Positions 1 to 12,379 of a DNA stretch of 64,000 bases are shown here, in pieces. The stretch covers positions 124,001 to 188,000 of the forward strand of contig QPMI01000093.1 in the NCBI GenBank assembly GCA_004431415.1, in the 5' to 3' direction. Below the pieces are notes generated by a model. The model was given only the letters and a program-made list of their open reading frames with translations. It made no database searches and was not told the DNA's origin. Within the stretch, counting starts at the first letter, position 1. Each line of letters begins with the position of its first letter. The stretch is from Cyanophora paradoxa CCMP329 (taxonomy: Eukaryota; Plantae; Glaucophyta). The translations under genes were made by a program, and so were the position numbers.

Positions 1-589
1 GCTCGATTCCACGAACAGTCACCAAGGCGATGAGCTCAAAATTTTGACGCGGTTACTATGGCAACCGCGTCAGGGGCCCAACGACCGAAGCGACCAAGTG
101 CCAAAAAAATGATGTCATGGCCCTTTCGGTCGTTAACAAGTACCAGCTCTTTTGCATTGAGGGACTTGAGAAAGTACCGTCTCTAGCGTATCCGGTTTTC
201 GGCCTGAGTACCCGCTCCGCACTGCGGCAGGCTGCGCATGCAGGCTCACTGAGTCAGGAAGTGGCTGCCAGTGCATGCACATGCGTTGTACTACAGTACC
301 TAGATCTGCCGCAGACTGGCCGCACGCGGCAGTATCGTAGTACTAGTAGTAGTCTAGTACTATTAGTACTACGTACTACGGTATATTATATAACGTCCTA
401 CGTATACGCCGTGTGACGGGCGTACGGCAGGCTGCAGCTGCCCAGTGCCCGCGGCCGGTCCCAGAAAGCGCTGCACTACTGTGCTAGCGCTGTCTGCTTG
501 CCTCGCCTGGGCTCAGCGGTACTAGCTATAGTCTTCTTCGGCGCCGGGGCACGACCCACGGCCCGGCGGTTTAACGTTGCCGGTCAACG

Positions 590-3500
590 ATGGTGAAGTT
601 TAGGTGGCATCGCAGCAAAGAAGAACGCAAGAAGAATGCTTCGCATCCGACCGCGATCGATGAACAGCTATCGGTACCGGTGCGCTCGCGCTCGCGCATT
701 TTCACGCGCATATGTATGCACGCCGGAGGGCATATTATAGATCTGCCGTAGATCAGGGCACGTCTCGATCGATCTCATGGCCTCTAAAAATGCTCGCTTG
801 CGCAGGAGTTTCAGCAGCGCCCACGGGATCGGGACGCTGGCGAACCGCAGGCCACGGCCGTGGCTGGGGAGAGCGGCCTCGTTGTGGTGACAATCAACGA
901 TCCACCCGTACACGCTACACGGGACGAAAAGGCGCTGGACCCCGAAGCCATGCAAATGCCCGTGCAAATGCACACATCTTCGGATATGGTATCAGCTTCA
1001 GCGCTCAGCGAGCTCGAGCCGAAAGCTCGCGGCAAGAGACGGGATTATTCCAGTGCACCGCTTCCCGATCCCCGCCCTGAAAAGCAAATCCAGTTCCACG
1101 ACGCGTGCGTCCACGATTTTCTTTATGTATGGTCGTCTTCGACAACATATATATCACTATATATCTTGACCTTCGGTTGGCCACAGTGCCGTCAGCTACG
1201 CCCGATCCTTCACCAGCGGGAAAGTGGCGACGCCCTCCGTTACAAATGCGCCCTTTGCCGCAACCCTCGCTCAAGGCCTTCAACGCTTCGGGTTGAGAGT
1301 GTGTATAATTTCATTTTATCAACGTCCATGCGCGCACATGGAAACTGAATCGACTTATAGACATGGTACGACAAAAAGAAGAAGGCCGATCATGGAGGAG
1401 GTATTGCGAGTGTGCAGCACCAGAAGCGGATCTCAGCAGCTATTGAGGGATGTGAATGTTTCATCGTTGTCGCGACAAAAGGTGCCCATTACCGTATCTG
1501 CATTTTATGACCTCGAAAGACGCAACATTTCACTGACCTTCGCCTCGAATAGAATGGTTCCGGTCACCGTGCGTTTCGCTTTTATCTCGCATGCTCGACT
1601 ACAACTCCCCCCCTCCCCCCTAACCCCAACTCCAATCCCTTGCTTTGTATGCTGGCCTGATCAGAAGGGGTGTTGACAGGGCTTGCCTCGTCGAGCTCGA
1701 CCACGCGGTTTGGCTCGGGCGCAAGATTGTCGCACTGTCAATTGGAACAAGTGTCCGCACGGCAGCGTCAGCCATTGGCACGGCCGAGGCGCGGGCTGCT
1801 GCTGCTATTCTGTCGAAGCACATGCAGATCAGCGTGAAGGAGTTGAGAGGAGCTGACCTTGCCCGAGTTCTGGATCGCCTAGCAGTGACGATTCGGGTCA
1901 GCCTTCAATGCTCTACTTGCACTCAATATATATATTATATACAGCGGACATCACGACGGATCTGATGCTGATTTCAACCGCAGCCCCAGGGAGCGTCAGT
2001 GGTTGAGCCAGGTGATTGCAATGTACACTTTATTACAGCGCGGGTTGCGCGCTTTGAATTTCAGCATCATGATCAGCATTGATATTGCGATCGATATCTT
2101 CAGAGGCGATATATATATTGTCGCTAAACGAACCTGCTTCGCAGATGCAAACGTCCCGATCAAGCCGTACGACGTCATGGTCTCGTGAGCATCCTTAAGC
2201 CTGCACATGAGCGTCAGCGTATCGCAAGTCTAATATCAATACCGCTCCTCTGCGATATACAGGTATCGCCGAAAGCAGACAGCAGAAATGCAGGTGTGCA
2301 CGAATATTAATCACGACTCTTCTTCAAAATAAACCAGTCACGTGCCACAGGTCATCTGTCATATCTTGAAGGAGCGGGCGATCTCGCACTGGGTTGATGT
2401 GGACAGAGAAAATGGTGAACACTGCTTATCGTTTCCGTACTGATTGCGAAATGCTACTTATTCATTGAGATCGTGGGCCTGCAAACTAAAAGGAATCCTG
2501 AAAGGAGTGCAATGGTTCGTACATGGTTGTTCGTTTAGTTCAAGTGCATATCTTTTTTCGTTCCTGGCTTTTTTGAATTCTTGAATTTGCGCAGGGGCAA
2601 GTCTATTGCAGCCGCTATTAAGGGAGCCTCGGTTGTACTCATCCTTCTCACAAACGATTGGCTTCAATCTCAGTACTGGTGTGTACGTATATACTTGTGC
2701 TAGAGCACTCGCTTTCGAGAGCTCATTCCCGATTTGATTTGGCATTGCGCAGCGTTGACGGTGTGCACACTCTCTATGATCAAATGTCGCGATTGGACAA
2801 TCCTATTACCTCTGACGATGCATAACCCCCCATTTCTGCATCTGGTCTTATTCCGTGTATGATCTTTTCCCGCAGAATTCGAATACGCCCAGGCGCAGAA
2901 CAAGCGCGTTGTGTACGTGTAACAGATAACTTTGCTTTCTTTGAATTAATTTTTTATCTCACTTATATATCACGATCGTTGTCTGATTTATGCACGTTTC
3001 GCTCTTTTGCATGCGTGGCAGGGTGCTCCAGCTGGAGGATATTGCTCCGCTGCCAGAGGAACTCGACGACGATGCGTCGGATTTCGCGCGCAGCTTCCTT
3101 CGGTGCGTTGACCTTTTGGCTTTTGGCTGCCGCTGATCATGAGTTGCCGTCACTCAATTGCAAACTCCGTACAGCCGGCAGCAGATGTGTATCGATGTGA
3201 GTCTTTTTTCATAGAGTCATGCATTTCTTTATTATTACTTGGCTTATTGATGTCCGGCAGGCGATAACCAAGTGGTAGGCCCTGCAAATGATAAAGAAGG
3301 ATATCAATCTGATCAAGATCCGAAGCTTGGCAGCACAATTTTGCAACCGCTGATTTGCTCCCACAGGCAGAAAGTTCGGTTCACTGCGCTCCTAGGAAAG
3401 AAGACGGCTGACCTCGAAGTGGTTGCCAACGACCCTGTGTTCTGCGAATCTGTCAAAGAAATGGAGGAGGCCATCATGGTACGTAAACTATATAGCTATT

Positions 3501-6500
3501 GTTTAATTCGCTCACCGTGAACATGGCTCACGCATCCGCATGCAGGTTGATGCAGATAACTCGCGGTGAGAGCGATATCTACGTATATACACAGCTTATC
3601 GCGATCGATGCGAGCTCGAGCATCGCAGGCTGCACACGCAGCTGACCCTGCGGGCGGACAAGTACAAAGAGGGTGCTCAAGCAAGCATGCGCTCAGATGC
3701 GCTTGATTAATTTGGCGTAATGCGCTCCTCTCAGCCCTGGGCTTCTCCCCGTCGACCCGTTGGACTGGTATCGACAGCGTCAGGCTCAAAACAATTGCAA
3801 AGAAGAAGCGCGAAAGAGCATCGGCATTTCTTCTTCATGGTCTTGCACTGGAGGAGGCCAACGAGGTTTGCTCTCGTAACTACCTTCTCGATACATGTAC
3901 GGCTCAAGAGTCATTTTCAACTTAGTGGCTGGACAAAACTGGACATGCCGTGCCTCAGAGGGCTTTCTTCTGGCTTCTTCCCGAGAGTGTGCAAGCGAAT
4001 CTGGATGCATACTTTGCGAGGTTCAATAAAAAGAAGGTGCAAATATACTGCTGTCTCTTTGAACATCTGTGAGCATGTCTTGATTTGTTTTTGCTTGGTC
4101 ACAGGAGAAAAAGCAGTGGAGTGGAACTTCGTTCTTGTGCTTCAAAAGCCCAATGGTGATTAATGCCGGGCTAGGGGCACCGAGCCCATCTTTTGATGAT
4201 ATATGTGTAATTGCGCACTGCCAGTATGCAAGCGAGCAAGCGGAGAGAATTAAATCGAGTGGATCGATGTTCTGCTGCTTCAAGAGCCCAATGGTGAGAC
4301 CCTGCTCCATGGTTCATTCCCACATGCGTGTGTGAATCTGCACGGTCAGTTCGCCCGCAAGCAACCGGAGAGCGAGAAACTCGACAATAAAAAGGTAAAT
4401 TACTGCCTATGCCTGCACACACACACGCATAGCTCTTACATTGACAATATTGTGTACGATTGCACGCGGTCAGGGCGCCCGGCAGGAACACATTGGAGCG
4501 ACGCGCGAGATGAAATCGAGTGGAACGCCATTCTGCTGCTTCAAGAGTCCCATGGTAAGACACCGCTGTAAATATAACCATGGGATGGCTCGACCGTGAC
4601 TGCGTGACTGTGCACTACCAGTACACCGACGACCACAAGGAGACTCAATCGCGACCAAAATCCTTGCATGTGGCCGAGGAAAGGCCAGCGCCCAAGATGG
4701 GTACGCCGTTCTTGTGCTTCAAGAGCCCGATGGTGCTAAGCTGCCACACTCTGCATCTCTTTATATACAATATGAAGCCTGACGATCCGTATTTCATCGT
4801 GTGCGTCCAGTACGACCGCAAGCAAGAGGAGACCGGGCCTGAGCGAGCGACCGATCGCGATCGCGAGGTCACAAAATCGATGGGAACGCCATTCTTGTGC
4901 TTCAAGAGCCCGATGGTGACAAACATCTCCCGCTGCAAGCAGCATGCCCACAGTCTCTAACCGTTTCTTAATACCTTGGCGCGTTCATGACCAGTACGAC
5001 CATGAGGATGAAGAGGAGAGCTCGAGCAAGAAATCGAGCGGATCAGTATTCTCCTGCTTCAAGCGGAAGGTGAAACGTTATTACGGATGTGAATATGTAT
5101 CTCAATGCATGTCTGTAACAAATTGATAGAAGGCGTTTCGGCAACCGGAGGATGTTGACTCGGAGGACGTGCAAGCGGGTGGAAAGGCGTTTCTGGAGCC
5201 GACGCCCGAGCATGTCGTAAGCGCACTGAGATTTAATTATTTCTTCCGCATTAGATTTCTTGAGTTGCAACGCCAAGGCTCAAACCACGTGCGCATGAGC
5301 AGGTGCTTGTACGTCACAGTGTTCGCCAAGCACTCAGCGAGAAACGGCGCCTCGCGAGCTACACCTGTATTTTCATTGCAGGTGCACTGGCATCAGAAAC
5401 CATGCACGGAGTTTCGCCACTTGCCTGTCTCACACTTCAATTTTCCCGTGCAGTTGTGACTGCCCTACTCGTTATTGCCGCCAGTTTTCTCATTGATGCT
5501 GAAATCAACAAGGCAAGGGCTCAAAATACAGCGGCTCAGCACAGCGACTTCCTCGGGGAATTGGGAACGATTGAAACCCAGCTCTACTTGGAGATCAAGA
5601 CCTTGCAGGAGGAGCTTAAAAGCCTTGATCTGGATTTAGACATTGTTGCGAACAAGATACTCAAGATACAACCCGTTACTTTGCAAAATTTGACTGCCAC
5701 GCACAACCTTACGGACGTTGATGAGCTCATCAAATTCTTCAAATCTCCACCCGCAACTGCAGCAGCAGCGTTGAATGCAACTTTAGCAGCAGCCTTGAAT
5801 GCAACTGGTGCAGGAGCCTTGAATTCAACTGCAGCAGCGGCCTTGAAATCGACTGCAGCAGCTGCCTTGAAGTCGACTGCAGCGTTCAACAATGAAACTG
5901 TGGTGACTACGAGCAATTCGACTGCGGCGGTTAACCGCACCCTACTGCAACTTCGATTGGATTTGTCTCGGCGGGCAAGGGACCTCGATCTTCAGCGTCA
6001 GCAGTGGGCTCAGGGGCAGGTTAAAAACGCTAAGACGCGGCTTGAAAACGAACTACGGAGCAAAGCGGACATGCGCAATGTAACTGCGGAGCAGCGCAAT
6101 GTAACTGTGGATCGACGCAATGTCACTGCAGAGCAACGCAATGTAACTGCGGAGCAACGTAACAGAACGAGCCTGCACATCGTAATTGCAGAGCTATGCA
6201 ACATAGCGACACTGCGCATTGCATCTGCGGAGCAACTCGCTGAATATGCTGGGAAACTCGACAAGACCGCGGCGCTCGTCGAGGAAACGGGGCGAGTCAA
6301 CTGCAACGACCTTCGAGTGTATTTCAGAGCGAGCCTGCACACCGTATTTGCGGAGACATGCGATATAGCGACACTGCGCATTGCATCTGCGGAGCAACTC
6401 TATGCTGGGAAACTCACCGCGACCGCGGCGCTCGTTAACGAAACGGGGCAAGTCAACTGCAACGACCTTCGAGTGTCTTTCAGAGCGAGCCTGCACACCG

Positions 6501-9500
6501 TATTTGCGGAGACATGCGATATAGCGACACTGCGCAATGCATCAGCGGAGCAACTCGCTAAATATGATGTGAAACTCACCACGACCGCGGCGCTCGTAGA
6601 GGAAACGGGGCAAGTCGACTGCAACGACCTTCGATTATACTTTATAGACCTGGAGGTGCGGCGCGCGCTAATCTTGGCTTCCCCTCCGCTTATTTATTAT
6701 TCACCTATTTGAACCGGAACAGCTGCAGAACAACGTTAACGCGGTCGCGTACTACTCCTATTTGAATTCGACAAAAAGCGTCGAGGCACTACTTCGCGCC
6801 GTAAACGCCACGTGCTACACGGAAATCGATTCTTTTTACAGGATGATACTGGATATTCGGAATTACAACAATTATGACTGCGCAAACTGGGGTTCAATTC
6901 AAGACAAAACTGAGAGGGGAAAGTGGAGATCTAGCATGACTCCTTCTGAACTTGTTGCCTTGGTCGTCGATGACGCGTTCGGTTCTGTGTCGACGCCTGC
7001 AAATATCACGGTGTGCAACTGCCGCAGGGGGCTATATCCTGCGCTTGCGTGTGCCCGCCTGCAGCTTGAAGCTCATGAAATGCAATATATCAGGTGCCTA
7101 AGCCGACATTCGAGAGATTCACGCACAGCGTGACATACGAGTGCGTGTTTTCTTGATTTAACCCTAACTCTAAGTTCGATTTGGAATGTGTGATAATCTG
7201 TCGCAGGTTTTTCACTAATTCTTATGCTGGCTGGCCGGGTTGCTCAAATTACGATCGTATCTCTGAATACAGTGCGAATTTTTACGGCCTGTCATATGCG
7301 GTGCGTTGGGACTCGAGTGCAGAAGCCTCGGACAATTTTTAGCATAACCACGTTTGACCGGCGATGGCAACAGCCGTATACAGCAAAGATCGGAAACGGC
7401 GAGTGCATCAAAACCGAGTCCGTTACGGTGCACCTAAAGCCTCGAATTCAGATACATGCCACGGATATTCAATTTACTTCGGATTTCATATAACAGTTCA
7501 ACGACTCATCAAATTCCCGAGAAGTAAACCTGCGTACCTACAATGTGTTGGGTGAACTTTCCAACGAATACAGTGCACCTTACGTCAGGGTACCTGAGAT
7601 TTTTGAGGCTGAAGCTTTCAGCCTCAATTGCAAGCTCACTTTTGCTTCGAATTTGCGATTTCCGTAGGTTCGGTGCTCTCTCGATGGCAGTTTCAATGTG
7701 GACGGCTTCATGGACGCTCAGTGCACTCGGCCTGCTTCTTATGGATCATCCTACTAGTGAGTGCTGTAGATATGCTCATGTGAAATAAGGACTCCCATAA
7801 CGCATCCCCGCACGCACAAAAAGCTCTGGAGGTGCTAGCTATTGCAAGAAAGCCCAGACTTACACTCTCAATGTACATGCACGTGGCGTCTACTTCGCTT
7901 ACAAGGCATTCTGCAAGTCCTTAACAAGCTCTGGCCATGGCTCAGGATCCGTATGTGCTTGCCCCGCCGTTCTGTCCTCACAATCGTGCTCAAGGCTTTT
8001 ATCTAGAGCGGATCGGAGAGCGGATCCTCTACGACTACGCCGATTGATGAAACAACGACGTCGACTATGCCGGAACCGGCGCCGGCGCCTCCGACGAACG
8101 CCAGCTCCAGACCCGTATGCGCCCCGGCCCGCCCACAAACTCGGGCAACTCAATTCTAATCCAATCCTTTGCTATTCAAGACTCCAACACCTACTCCCAA
8201 ACCTAGCCCTACGCCTTTGCCGAGCTTGGTCGTAGATTTCTTGTGCGTTGGTGACATTGATTTCTATCAAGATATACAGTGATAGCTTTTTTCCATCATT
8301 GGCATCATGGAGATTAATATTTCCGTTGCAGATTCAATAATGCAGACTGCAGCGGACGCGATGGTGCTTACGGAAAGTACACGATTGAGATCCCAGACAG
8401 AAGATGCATAGATCCCCTTACAATTCGGGTGCCTCTACAGCGTCACTCAAATTCCTCTTTAGATCTGATCGAAATCGCGCGATCAGTTTATTGAGGACAA
8501 TGGAAATGCAGCGTCAGCGTTCACATCCAGTTATTTGCGAAACGCTATAAGCCCTTTGGGTCGGGGTTACATCACGGTATCTGACAATATTCACCCAAAT
8601 AGAGAAGCGAATCTTCCATCGTATCGTACTAACATTCACTTCTTTGTAGGCGAAATGCGATGAGGACCGGTTCTACACGTATGCGTACACGTCGTCGAGT
8701 TGCCCTTCGTGGAGTTCGGTAGCGTCGTCCACCTTCAGGTGAGTGAAAGACGAATAACACTCCCGGCTCTTTTATAATATATTTATAAAGCCTCACACCT
8801 TTCTCGAACTCAGCTCTTTCGGCACTCAAAAATGCATGACATCCACATACTTAGGAAGTACCAACACCTACAAAGTTGCTTGCAGGGCGAAGACAACGCC
8901 TACGCCGACTCCCACGCCTAAAGTGCCATCAAGGGCGAACGTGACTTTCAAGTGCGTCTTTCCTGGTTTATTCAGCGACCGACCATGAAGTAAAGTTTAA
9001 GCTTGTTATAATTACGTTCACCGCAGGGTTTTCAGAAGGGCTTCGGACACTTTAGCCACGTGCGATCCGGCGACTGCCATCTCAGCTAGCGACGCAGCGT
9101 TTTACGGGTTTTCCACTCCAGTGCGCTATGATCCGCCTCAAACTCAACTGAATTGCAATTGGAGCTTAAGCACTGTCGACAGCCATTCACCGCGGAGTTT
9201 CCAGTCGATGAATGCATGAATGCAAATTCAATTCGGGTACTTTTTTTAGATCTCAAATTTGCGACTAGTTATTCGTAGTGACTCGCGTGGCTTGTAGTTC
9301 AAGGAGGCGTCGAACGAGACAATTGCGACTGCTCGAGAAGTGAACGAGAACACGCACACTGTCTTGCGTGACATTGTAGCAGGAGGAGCACCTTACGTCA
9401 AGGTACATGAAAATCGCTTCCAACATTAAATTTTGTGCTTGATTTTAAGTTAATATCGTGATCGCCCATCCTTCCAGGCGAGGTGCGAGATAGGCCAAAA

Positions 9501-9725
9501 CGGGAACCGTTACGTTGTGGAGGAGCACACGGACTCTCAGTGCACGGCGGCGACTGCGACAACCTTTCAGTAAGTGCTCTAAATCTGTAGTCCCTTGAAT
9601 ATATCTATATATCATGTTCACATCTTTTCCTCAGCTCGCCTACTGCATGCATCTGGAAACAACTAGCGCAAGTGCAGGCCGATGGCCACGAAGTCGATTA
9701 CCAGGTTATCTGCAGCAAACTATAG
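590..9725 (+). CDS. Multi-exon gene (>30 exons): tandem-TIR type-II transmembrane protein with a long N-glycosylated ectodomain
   Basis: Hand-spliced with GT-AG introns. TIR1: FHDAAVSYARS...FAATLAQGLQRFGLRTWYD...ISAAIEGCECFIVVATKEWFRSPACLVELDHAVWLGRKIVAL. TIR2: YDVMVSYRRK...LKERAISHWVD...WGKSIAAAIKGASVVLILLTNDWLQSQYCVDEFEYAQAQNKRVV. Linker: LHTQLTLRADKY...FLLHGLALEEANEWL...LEPTPEHVVLVRHSVRQALSEKRR. TM: LASYTCIFIAVVTALLVIAASFLI (~5350-5495). Many NxS/T sequons follow. The last exon ends ...DYQVICSKL-TAG at 9725. Continuity of the exons at 7.1-9.6 kb is less certain. Confidence 0.8.
1090..3105 (+). other. Two TIR (TIR_2-like) domains, split over about 13 exons
   Basis: The canonical TIR motif order (D-x-x-V-S-Y, W-x-D, I-x-x-A-I, hydrophobic strand, S-x-x-C-x-x-E, then K/R-I/V-V) is recovered twice after splicing. 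Confidence 0.85.
4105..5069 (+). repeat. Array of short phase-0 exons, six carrying a G[TS]xFxCFK motif (five end CFKSPM, one CFKRK)
   Basis: Exons 4105-4155, 4225-4293, 4350-4394 (spacer without the motif), 4474-4554, 4622-4732, 4811-4915 and 4995-5069. All lengths are multiples of 3 and all are bounded by AG/GT. Confidence 0.85.
5755..6650 (+). repeat. Coding repeats in the ectodomain: AAAL[NK][AS]T heptads, RNVTAEQ heptads and three ~52-54-aa Cys-containing repeats
   Basis: Visible in ORF 5303..6712. The unit SLHTVFAETCDIATLRIASAEQL..GKL..TAALVxETGxVNCNDLRVYFRA occurs three times. Confidence 0.9.
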
Positions 9726-10189
9726 TTCAAACCCCTCACACGACGGCTGGACGAGTCTTCACCTCTGACTTCGATTTCGAGATCTTCCACGTCTTCGAAT
9801 TCAGCAAAATCAGTTACATGATCTGGAGTCTGGCCGGCTATAGCTAGCGATACACTGTGATCAAGCAGATAGTTAATGTTTGAAAGTGCGCCCTTCTCGC
9901 AAGCAGGCGAGTGCAGTGCGGGTGCCCACACTAGTGAATCAGGGCCCGGGGGGCTGTTCCTATGGGGTATCCGTCACGCCGCGCTGTGCCGCGCCTGCGC
10001 TCTAGGGCCAAGTCCCCCCCCCCTCTTTCCCCCACCCCCCCACCCCCCAACCGCCCTCTTGGCCTGCACCCCTAGGCCTGGCGCCCATGCCCACGCCTCC
10101 CGTGCGCGCATCGCCGCCCCGCCACCCCTGCACCCCTGCCCCCCAGCCCCGTGTCCCAGCGCCCCTGCCCCCCGCGGCCCTCCACCCTC

Positions 10190-11540
10190 GCAAGTCGGGC
10201 TCCCTGCGCCCGCCCCGTCGCGCGAGACGTGGGTCTGAAGGGGGGAGAGGCGCGCACCAAGCGAGAGAAGGGTCGCCGCTGCGCCCCTGCCGACGCCGCG
10301 AGGGCGCCGCGAGTCGGGCTCCCTGCACACCCCGGGGCCCGCCCCGTCGCGCGAGGCGCAGCGCCGAAGCGTGGGGAGGCCGCCAGGCGCTCACCAAGCG
10401 AGAAAAGGGCCGCCGCTGCGCTCCGGCCACCCCTGCCGCGAGGGCGCCGCGAGTCGGGCTCCCTGCGCCCGCCCCGTCACGCGAGGCGCGGCGCCGAAGG
10501 GCGGGAGGCCCGCACCAAGCGTGAGAAGGGCTGCCGCTGCGCCCCGGCCACCCCCGCCGCGAGGGCGCCGCGAGTCGGGCTCCCTGCACCCGCCCCGTCG
10601 CGCGAGGCGCGGCGCCGAAGGGCGGGAAGCGCGCACCGAGCGAGAGAAGGGCCGCCGCTGCGCCCTGGCCACCTTCGCCGCGAGGGCGCCACGAGTCGGG
10701 CTCCCTGCACCCGCCCCGTCGCGCGAGGTGCGGCGCCGAAGGACTGGGAAGCGTGCACCGAGCGAGAGAAGGGCCGCCGCTGCGCCCCGGCCCCCCGGCG
10801 CCGCGATTCGGGCTCCCTGCGCCCGCCCCGTCACGGCGTCACGCGAGGCGCGGCGCCGAAGGGCGGGGAGGCGCGCAACAAGCGAGAGAAGGGCCACCAC
10901 TGCGCCCCGGCCCGGCGGCCGCCCCCACCCACGGCCGGGCCCCGAAGGCGCGCGAGGTTGCCGCGAGTTGGGCTCCCTGCACCAGCCCCGTCGCGCGGGG
11001 CGCAGCGCCGAAGGGCGGGGAGGCGTGCACCAAGCGAGAGAAGGGCCGCCGCTGCGCCCCGGCCGCCGGGCGCCCCCCGCCGCGAAGGGCGGCGAGGCGC
11101 GCACCGAGCGAGAGAAGGGCCGCCGCTGCGCCCCGGCCGCCCGGCCGCCCCTGCCGCGAGGGCGCCGCGAGTCGGGCTCCCTGCGCCCGCCCCGTCACGC
11201 GAGGCCGCGCGCCGCCGGGCGCGGCGCCGAATGACTGGGAGGCGCGCACCGAGCGAGAGAAGGGCCGCCGCTGCGCCCCGGCCGCCTGGCGCCCCCGCCG
11301 CGAGGGCGCTGCGAGTCGGGCTCCCTGCACCCGCCCGTCGACGTCGCGCGAGGCGCGGCGCCGAATGACTGGGAGGCGCGCACCGAGCGAGAGAAGGGTC
11401 GCCGCTGCGCCCCGCGGGCCGGCCAGCCCCACCGGTACCGTGAGGGCGCCGCGAGTCGGGCTCCCTGCGCCCGGCCCGCCCCGTCGCGCGAGGCGCGGCG
11501 CTGATCATGAGGGTCGGGGAGGCGCGCGCCAACCGAGAGA
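10190..11540. repeat. GC-rich tandem repeat (minisatellite/satellite), about 10 units of ~110-200 bp
   Basis: The anchor GAGTCGGGCTCCCTGC or a close variant occurs at ~10193, 10311, 10451, 10572, 10693, 10805, 10965, 11169, 11313 and 11453. Each unit also contains CACCGAGCGAGAGAAGGGCCGCCGCTGCG or a variant. Confidence 0.95.
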
Positions 11541-12379
11541 AATTCGAACGCCGGGCGTAAGCAAGGAGGCGGAGTCGTCAGGGGCGAGCAGCCGCTGGGA
11601 GCAGCTAAGTCCTGCGAGCGCTAGCGCAAGTCATGATCAGCCGCGGCCGGCGCCGGCACATTGGACGAGGTGCAGCGACGAATTCGAACGCGTTCCAGAT
11701 CGGTGTTAGGGCGCATCCGACGGTCAGGAGAGCTTCGGGCGCACTGATCATGAGTCGGCTGCAGGCCTTCGGGGCAGCGTCCGCGGCCCGGCGGCCGCCG
11801 GGCCGGCGCACGCGACCACGTGCACGATCCGCGCGGCTGCGGTCACCGGCCCGGGTGCCGCTGTCTAGACATCGACGCCATCGCGACTCGGCGATCCGAC
11901 TCGGCGATGATCGTGAGTCTACCGTAGTACATGCCGCCGGGCCGCTGGCGTCCGGATCGCGCCGGGCCCCGCGGGCGCCGGAGACGCCCGGAAATTTTTT
12001 AATTGCCGGCTCGAGCTAGCAAACTTTTAAGGCTTGAAAAGCCCCACCGGCCCGGCTCTATCGAGCCGGCTCCGCGATGCCATCATGGCATGCATATGAT
12101 ATATATGATATATCGATATCGATGTGCCCCTCAATTGCAACTTGGCAAGCCGGCCCGGCGGCTTGCAATTGCTCACTGAGTCACTGAGTCAAGCCGGCTC
12201 GCGGCCGCGGGCCGGCCGGGCCGCCGGCCGGACTCGGAGCGCCGGCGCGGCCGCGCCGCCGGCGCCGCGGGCGTGCCGCGTGCCACGGTGCATGCCGCAG
12301 TGCCGGGCACTGCCGGCTGGACGGTCTCGACCGGGTCGAAAATCGAACTAATTTTTAATATCGTGCGAATTAATATTGT

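Follow-up and report, generated by a model that had tools for sequence, protein, structure and literature searches.

Immunity relies on TIR domains in bacteria, plants and animals alike. In the known TIR surface receptors, the animal TLR and IL-1R proteins, the TIR domain is situated at the C-terminus: these are type-I single-pass proteins with a signal peptide, an extracellular, glycosylated N-terminal sensor made of leucine-rich repeats (LRR) or immunoglobulin (Ig) domains, and one cytosolic TIR that acts as an adaptor and whose catalytic Glu is not in use. The NAD+-cleaving TIR proteins (SARM1, RPP1, ROQ1, ThsB, Cat1), which carry the Glu of a (W)C-x-x-E motif, are cytosolic, and their sensors are ARM/SAM domains, NB-LRR domains or separate proteins. 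We know of no surface receptor of the TLR/IL-1R type that signals by NAD+ cleavage, and literature searches were negative both for TIR receptors in Cyanophora or glaucophytes and for bacterial TIR-WD40 membrane proteins. Here we describe a locus of the glaucophyte Cyanophora paradoxa CCMP329, situated at positions 590-9725 of a 64,000-nucleotide (nt) stretch of contig QPMI01000093.1 (positions 124,001 to 188,000; in the following called the window), that probably represents one intron-rich nuclear gene for a single-pass type-II membrane receptor built on a bacterial-type signalling frame; we put the probability of this reading at about 0.72. Like the TLR and IL-1R proteins, the predicted product would be a single-pass surface receptor with cytosolic TIRs and an extracellular glycosylated sensor, but its TIRs are N-terminal, a signal peptide is lacking, the N-x-S/T sequons are C-terminal, no LRR or Ig match was obtained, and no sequence relationship to these receptors was found beyond the TIR fold. 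With the NAD+-cleaving TIRs it shares the Glu motif, whereas its TIR pair would be tethered to the membrane, with the sensor outside.

The splice model of the locus was built by reading the three forward frames and extends from 950 to at least 7300 on the forward strand. It is free of stop codons, all of its introns are of the GT-AG type, and it comprises 25 exons with 1,069 residues or 27 exons with 1,162 residues, depending on which of two routes (routes 1 and 2) is taken through the end of the linker (Table 1). The encoded domains are, in this order, a first and a second TIR (TIR1 and TIR2), a helical linker, one membrane helix of 24 residues and an ectodomain predicted to be glycosylated, an order that had already been obtained by hand-splicing in an earlier note on this DNA, which was made from the letters alone. 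That note had also described the gene as nearly invisible among the open reading frames (ORFs). Indeed, almost no long ORF exists at the locus apart from 5303-6712, the exons being small and including micro-exons of 8-22 nt. The extent of 590-9725 given in the earlier note was not retained at its start, since the first exon that could be defined has its earliest in-frame ATG at 950, and its end at 9725 was not confirmed. The first exon contributes 52 hydrophilic residues without a signal peptide, and additional exons may lie further upstream. Contigs of a sequencing run (X1) that behaves as genomic DNA, but whose kind of library is not on record, match positions 1100-7099 in order and without indels; the many frame changes of the locus are thus not assembly errors. 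Because micro-exons allow an in-frame path to be forced through nearly any sequence, frame continuity was given weight only where homology supports it.

Table 1. Features of the TIR receptor locus (positions in the window; P0001, paralogous protein of C. paradoxa; E1-E3, ectodomain exons; routes 1 and 2, alternative paths between linker and membrane helix)
Feature	Positions	Strand	Remarks
First exon as far as defined	950..1104	+	first in-frame ATG at 950 (presumed start codon); donor GTGCGT at 1105
TIR1, four exons	1187-1298, 1361-1481, 1553-1568 (16 nt), 1680-1896	+	P0001 match from 1361 on
Short exon between the TIRs, PQGASVVEP	1984..2011	+	near-identical in P0001
TIR2, exons 1-5 of 9	2145-2184, 2263-2293, 2351-2414, 2493-2514 (22 nt), 2595-2678	+	P0001 match
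TIR2, exons 6-9 of 9	2753-2760 (8 nt), 2876-2912, 3022-3102, 3175-3196	+	P0001 match
Linker exons	3261-3274, 3367-3478, 3556-3565 (10 nt, uncertain), 3595-3672, 3735-3865	+	in-frame GT-AG
Last linker exon	3926-4020 (route 1) or 3926-4068 (route 2)	+	in-frame GT-AG model
Dispersed repeat copies	4249-4306, 4510-4567, 4696-4735, 4874-4917		
Acidic low-complexity insert ending EPTPEHV, route 2 only	4943-5069, 5130-5216	+	better splice-site scores
Pre-membrane exon, first half of helix	5303..5381 (start 5320 in route 1, 5303 in route 2)	+	
In-frame, stop-free intron of 72 nt	5382..5453	+	donor GTGCAC, acceptor tttcccgtgcag
Exon E1	5454..6655	+	second half of helix, predicted long helical stalk, repeats
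Exon E2	6723-7093	+	Cys-containing module with 3 sequons; in-frame GT-AG
Exon E3	7207 to about 7300	+	FYGLSYAVRWD; in-frame GT-AG
Probable further ectodomain exons	7301..9725	+	from reading of the frames

Such homology support was provided by a paralogue. With the TIR1 exon 1681-1896 alone as bait, a search of 1.84 billion representative proteins returned one match (E 2.3e-8), namely a protein of 304 residues from a different locus of C. paradoxa (tig00000523_g1837.t1, EukProt EP00741_P001897; hereafter P0001). This protein scores against the Pfam family TIR_2 with an E-value of 4.5e-21 (76 bits, in two stretches) and against TIR with 7e-10. Three junctions of the local model were corrected by using P0001 before the final alignment, in which 16 consecutive exons of the corrected model match P0001 in order (298 aligned residues, 2 gaps, 64% identity). 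P0001 also has counterparts of the residues that the 16-, 22- and 8-nt micro-exons contribute. The first correction placed the donor of exon 1361 at 1482, followed by the 16-nt micro-exon, and so disposed of an apparent frameshift in TIR1. The second replaced an exon extension (EHCLSFP) by the 22-nt micro-exon, and the third replaced a TIR2 reading W-C-V-Q-F-E, with Gln in the catalytic position, by C-V-D-E through the 8-nt micro-exon. From the second TIR1 exon onward, the predicted TIR-TIR part of the model is thus confirmed by P0001, and since the model aligns to a protein that scores as TIR_2, the gene in the window holds, by transitivity, two TIR domains. A TIR profile match, which the earlier note had proposed as a check, was obtained in this way for the paralogue; two single exons of the window weakly match TIR models and nothing else in the respective library. 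Both Glu motifs are the same in P0001, and the similarity covers the C-terminal part of TIR1, TIR2 and the first linker exons, whereas the public model of P0001 begins within TIR1 and ends in the linker, without membrane helix or ectodomain; micro-exons may explain why it stops there. Homologue searches of a protein collection with P0001 returned only P0001 itself, a scan of genome contigs with P0001 peptides detected no bacterial relative, and a search for further TIR exons elsewhere in the window found none. In the region 1890-2305 the depth of the X1 contigs doubles (about 70-100 versus 42); collapsed short contigs show loose ends at 2139/2140, and two bases differ (2214 and 2219). In the part 1984-2293 the encoded residues are nearly the same as in P0001, whereas those of the flanking exons are only about 50-65% identical, and 1890-2305 looks like a recent gene-conversion tract between the paralogues.

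Both TIRs keep the Glu that had been pointed out from the letters. The TIR1 motif S-P-A-C-L-V-E-L, with its Glu codon at 1693-1695, is contiguous in the DNA as far as ACLVEL (1681-1698) is concerned, and P0001 follows the reading EWF.SPACL in order across the 16-nt micro-exon. The TIR2 motif S-Q-Y-C-V-D-E-F is non-contiguous and arises by splicing from 2678 to the 8-nt exon 2753-2760 and on to 2876. Where TIR2 of the window reads YCVDEF, P0001 reads YCLDEF, and the latter aligns on WCLDEL of the plant RPP1 TIR, the Glu of which is the catalytic residue. Both TIRs also have their Glu at the position of the conserved Glu in the profile of the bacterial family described below, and an alignment of TIR1 with TIR2 has a z-score of 6.4, a score that was reached by none of 500 shuffles. 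Scored by single exons, the window gives weak family matches: exon 1361-1492 matched ThsB TIR-like (E 0.028) as the sole match in that library, and exon 2596-2685 had TIR_2 as its sole Pfam match (13.5 bits, E 0.1, profile positions 43-68 of 122), the gathering score of this family (PF13676) being 28 bits. The best PDB matches of the latter exon are plant TIRs. For P0001, the best solved relatives are the plant RPP1 TIR and the bacterial Cat1, both of them NAD+-cleaving TIR proteins, besides one chain with the deposited name ADP-ribosyl cyclase/cyclic ADP-ribose hydrolase and one with the name NAD+ hydrolase. No match was obtained for the TIR1 exons in a phmmer search of the PDB, nor for single exons in tblastn searches of plasmids or in an NCBIfam scan. 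A single-sequence AlphaFold2 (AF2) model of P0001 showed beta-alpha alternation at residues 141-283, but the mean predicted local distance difference test score (pLDDT) was only 53, and the AF2 models of both P0001 and exon E1 were too weak for fold searches. A stretch reading FAFISHAR at about 1575-1600 resembles a TIR start but sits in an intron and was discarded.

As far as sequence comparison goes, enzyme-type TIRs are favoured by the conserved Glu and by the closest relatives. Alternatively, there could be one receptor gene whose TIRs serve as adaptor or scaffold, or which has a role in adhesion or environmental sensing instead of NAD+-based immunity. Animal receptor TIRs do signal via protein-protein contact, and the ectodomain, with its helical stalk and Ser/Thr/Pro-rich pieces, resembles a structural surface glycoprotein. 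We nevertheless consider this explanation doubtful, because the Glu is kept in both TIRs in alignment with that of the bacterial family and, in TIR2, with the Glu of RPP1 WCLDEL, and because the closest solved relatives are TIRs deposited as NAD+-cleaving enzymes or, like RPP1 and Cat1, known as such, and not TLR or MyD88 TIRs.

The linker exons carry ELEHRRLHTQLTLRADKY and AFLLHGLALEEANEWL, with HTQLTLRA at 3633 and LLHG at 3830, and VRHS/EKRR follow at 5309/5339. These motifs of the earlier note were found at the places given there, with the exception that the longer reading PTP....VRHS exists only in route 2. Single linker exons had no match in Pfam, NCBIfam, PADLOC or plasmids, and one linker exon had none in the ESM Atlas. 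Bacterial relatives were detected with a degenerate DNA pattern that represents the motif L-L-H-G-x2-L-x2-A-x2-W-L of the alga and was run against bacterial genomes, one for each species. As was to be expected, chance matches make up most of the 120 loci returned. Seven or eight loci align with the local model from the TIR start to the motif (best E 5e-8 to 8e-10); these are TIR_2 and WD40 proteins with the LLHG motif about 30-60 residues past the TIR, and all five long ORFs that were scanned encode an N-terminal TIR_2 domain and C-terminal WD40 propellers. The motif HT.L..RA..W, which was not part of the search pattern, is present at the right distance in 6 of the 120 loci. The bacterial layout consists of a TIR, the segments 'DTDL.hVR.HTRL.VRA.EW', 'gFLLHG.DL..AE.WL' and 'P..L..EYI.ASR...R.R', a membrane helix, a coiled coil and WD40 repeats. 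With the TIR, linker and transmembrane (TM) region of one bacterial member as query, the family comprises at least 1,395 proteins (E <= 1e-3), which are annotated solely as 'TIR domain-containing protein' or 'WD40 repeat protein'. The named members belong to the Chloroflexota, Cyanobacteria, Actinomycetota and Bacteroidota, to which the pattern-matched loci add the Acidobacteriota, and a TM-like stretch directly follows the linker in 115 of the best 120 members.

A profile of the TIR-linker-TM region built from 135 sequences scores 83.9 bits against the local model, and its parts occur in the alga in the same order (TIR1, 25.5 bits; TIR2, 51.5 bits; HT motif, 0.6 bits; the block from LLxG to TM, 15.0 bits, with an i-Evalue of 7e-7 over profile positions 152-225). 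A profile of the block preceding the motif scores 12.5 bits against the alga, which none of 2,000 shuffles reached, and pairwise alignments span the whole bacterial TIR, linker and TM with E-values down to 7e-14. By these alignments, homology to the N-terminal half of the bacterial family covers the predicted protein completely between the start of TIR2 and the membrane helix, the linker included. The linker had been called bacterial-type in the earlier note, for which a lack of bacterial homologues would have spoken against its reading. Such homologues exist in the form of this TIR-linker-TM-WD40 family, in which the first two motifs stand in the same order, followed by a comparable pre-helix segment and the TM. 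Members such as L091:51-2498:- (from an Anaerolineae metagenome-assembled genome) and P0005 (Leptothoe kymatousa) share with the alga an N-terminal TIR_2 with C-x-x-E, both linker motifs, a basic cluster, a single membrane helix, a sensor part beyond the helix and a putative orientation with the N-terminus inside and the C-terminus outside (N-in/C-out). The alga differs in being eukaryotic with at least 25 exons, in lacking a separate linker behind TIR1, which directly adjoins TIR2, in a spacing of 36 instead of 9 residues between the HT and LLHG motifs, owing to an insert of about 27, and in a repeat-rich ectodomain, predicted to be helical and glycosylated, in place of the WD40 propeller. 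No WD40 match was found between 5264 and 9275, and the locus is therefore a relative of the signalling half of the bacterial family and not a full member.

Variation of the module arrangement was also observed within the bacterial family. The cyanobacterial members P0004, P0005, P0006 and P0011 contain three tandem TIR and linker modules followed by a helix and WD40 propellers, so that stacked TIRs are also a bacterial feature, and P0007 (662 residues) has three such modules without a propeller. An Acidobacteriaceae protein (L075:1255-3858:-) combines a TIR, both linker motifs and WD40 repeats without a membrane helix, and L104:4327-7845:- has a first linker and then a second TIR ahead of the helix.

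The membrane helix is encoded across two exons. Removal of the intron 5382-5453 joins two half-hydrophobic stretches, of which the first, LASYTCIFIA, is preceded in the pre-membrane exon by S-VRQALSEKRR, into the 24-residue helix RR-LASYTCIFIAVVTALLVIAASFLI-DAE. In more than 1,000 residues, this is the only segment of the model with a Kyte-Doolittle hydropathy above 1.6. It is flanked by EKRR on one side and DAE on the other, and the N-x-S/T sequons are distributed 0 before and 18 after the helix. A type-II, N-in/C-out topology would fit the single helix, the EKRR ahead of it and this sequon distribution. The type-II topology and the missing signal peptide proposed in the earlier note thus agree with the hydrophilic N-terminus and the features of the helix region.

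Beyond the helix, exon E1 contains three kinds of tandem repeats within the spans 5753-5883, 6074-6159 and 6163-6634. Their units of 24, 21 and 156 nt encode, respectively, an Ala/Asn sequon repeat of 8 residues, the heptad RNVTAEQ (five copies) and a repeat of 52 residues that contains two Cys and is present in about three copies. Exon E1 holds 15 of the 18 sequons and is predicted by AF2 from the single sequence to be almost entirely helical, at a low confidence (pLDDT 40). Further downstream, Ser/Thr/Pro-rich stalk pieces occur at 8007-8156, about 8170-8230 and about 8880-8950. Homologue searches with the long exon 5264-6709 found none, a Pfam scan of the ectodomain ORF pieces in 5264-9275 revealed no WD40, LRR, Ig or other match, and neither a PDB phmmer search with the ectodomain exons nor an ESM Atlas search with E2 returned relatives. 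The ectodomain is predicted to be helical, is rich in repeats and has no detectable relatives. A motif C...(A)FYG[LF]S..VR[WY]D...C.W occurs twice (7207-7340 and 9001-9216) and recalls the start of a CUB domain, but CUB was not confirmed by Pfam and PDB searches with the single exons that carry the C...FYG[LF]S motif. A small gene finder applied to 7300-10400 chained implausible tiny exons, and its output was discarded as over-fitted.

Several observations weigh against the reading of the locus as one receptor gene on a bacterial-type frame. A test with the small gene finder indicated that in-frame path-finding is permissive, so continuity by itself proves little, and the pairwise identity to the bacterial members is low (21-25%). 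P0001 covers the local model only up to 3478, and its gene model stops right after the equivalent of exon 3367-3478, so that it does not join the TIRs to an ectodomain. The junction from 3478 to 3595 needs a 10-nt micro-exon and an intron of 29 nt, with several in-frame alternatives between 3478 and 3735. From 4020/4068 to 5303/5320 two routes exist, one of which is favoured by the bacterial profile and the other by the splice-site scores. None of the runs recorded as RNA contains the stretch, and no contig on 1100-7099 was obtained from three further runs, each of a different study, that are probably RNA.

In the first of these junctions, the solution that keeps 3595-3672 is favoured by the resemblance of the resulting ELEHRRLHTQL to the bacterial DL.hVR.HTRL. 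In the second, route 1 joins 4020 directly to 5320 across an intron of 1,299 nt with weak splice sites; its product ...AYFA-S-VRQALSEKRR-TM matches the bacterial 'EYI.ASR...RR-TM' one to one and accounts for the 15.0 bits as a single block. Route 2 adds an insert of about 93 residues and fits the bacterial profile less well (8.9 and -0.2 bits versus 15.0 for route 1). Both routes hold the TIRs and the ectodomain in one frame. The G + C content at third codon positions (GC3) of the linker exons is 0.615, which compares with 0.622 for the confirmed exons and 0.47 for the introns. The long intron also contains four copies of a dispersed repeat of 40-58 nt that are 83-95% identical; this repeat translates to ...GTPFLCFKSPMV... 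in several frames and is therefore not coding, and an Rfam scan of 1-12000 yielded no match to it or to any other part of that region.

The end of P0001, the lack of RNA joining the halves, and the fact that the intron between them (874 or 1,299 nt) is the longest and least certain of all would also be expected if the locus comprised two genes, one for a soluble TIR-TIR protein that ends in the linker and one for a secreted or anchored glycoprotein. The latter could start at an ATG at 5412, inside the proposed intron 5382-5453, where a hydrophobic stretch follows, and its first 30 or so residues (MHGVSPLACL...VVTALLVIAASFLI) would be a signal peptide or anchor. This arrangement appears quite improbable, however. 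The exon 5303/5320-5381 adjoins the large ORF in the same frame, so that the TIR-linker part remains fused to the ectodomain even if intron 5382-5453 is retained; in the bacterial family the membrane helix follows immediately on the linker, and the alga shows a match to this block in the same order; the linker exons past 3478 show the family motifs and a coding-like GC3; and the end of P0001 (…EEAITPLN, stop) falls at the 10-nt micro-exon or alternative junction and may be mis-called. Moreover, in route 1 the bacterial unit preceding the helix is split between the exons 3926-4020 and 5320-5381, which argues for one mRNA. Most likely, then, the predicted receptor is encoded by a single transcript, a claim that rests on the reading frame, GC3 composition and collinearity with the bacterial family.

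The empty RNA runs could also mean that the locus is a silent or decaying copy within an expanding receptor family, unexpressed or mis-spliced, and the extreme splicing demands (micro-exons of 8, 10, 16 and 22 nt and possibly a 29-nt intron) and the ectodomain without relatives would be compatible with decay. We regard this as unlikely, given that more than 1,050 codons over at least 25 exons are free of stops and frameshifts, that both catalytic-type Glu residues and the family motifs are kept, and that P0001 contains the residues of the 16-, 22- and 8-nt micro-exons. In addition, receptor genes frequently stay unexpressed as long as a culture is not challenged, and rare transcripts are lost from contigs.

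For the receptor gene favoured here, the signalling frame was most likely taken over from bacteria, split by introns and extended by a second TIR, and the WD40 propeller would have been replaced at this locus by a different ectodomain. A ligand or surface change at the ectodomain might then bring receptor molecules together, upon which the cytosolic TIR pairs could assemble into an active NADase that would deplete NAD+ or make a nucleotide signal for defence or cell death. More tentatively, and with the odds against it, the locus may belong to an undescribed surface immune system of glaucophytes, in which a multigene set of N-in/C-out receptors on a bacterial frame exchanges ectodomains and signals by NAD+ cleavage at the plasma membrane. 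If true, TIR-based transmembrane sensing would have arisen independently of the animal Toll-like receptors and in the opposite orientation. A layout in which a bacterial frame keeps enzyme-type TIRs beneath the membrane while the sensor lies outside would be new for eukaryotes, and the locus would illustrate concretely how a complete half of a bacterial receptor came into a eukaryote and was diversified by ectodomain exchange. The bacterial TIR-linker-TM-WD40 family, with well over a thousand members, is a large family to study in its own right. For genome annotation, the locus is a warning that micro-exons of 8 to 22 nt can hide a gene from ORF scans, as is the paralogue, whose public model ends in the linker.

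The base composition of the receptor locus differs from that of its surroundings. Its G + C content is about 48-55%, whereas that of the neighbouring 54 kb is 47-78% and mostly above 55%; the lower value could reflect a foreign origin or the region of a fast-evolving gene family. Directly downstream, positions 10189-11501 are occupied by a tandem-repeat block of 78% G + C with periods of 121, 74 and 134 nt, which contains long spurious ORFs on both strands.

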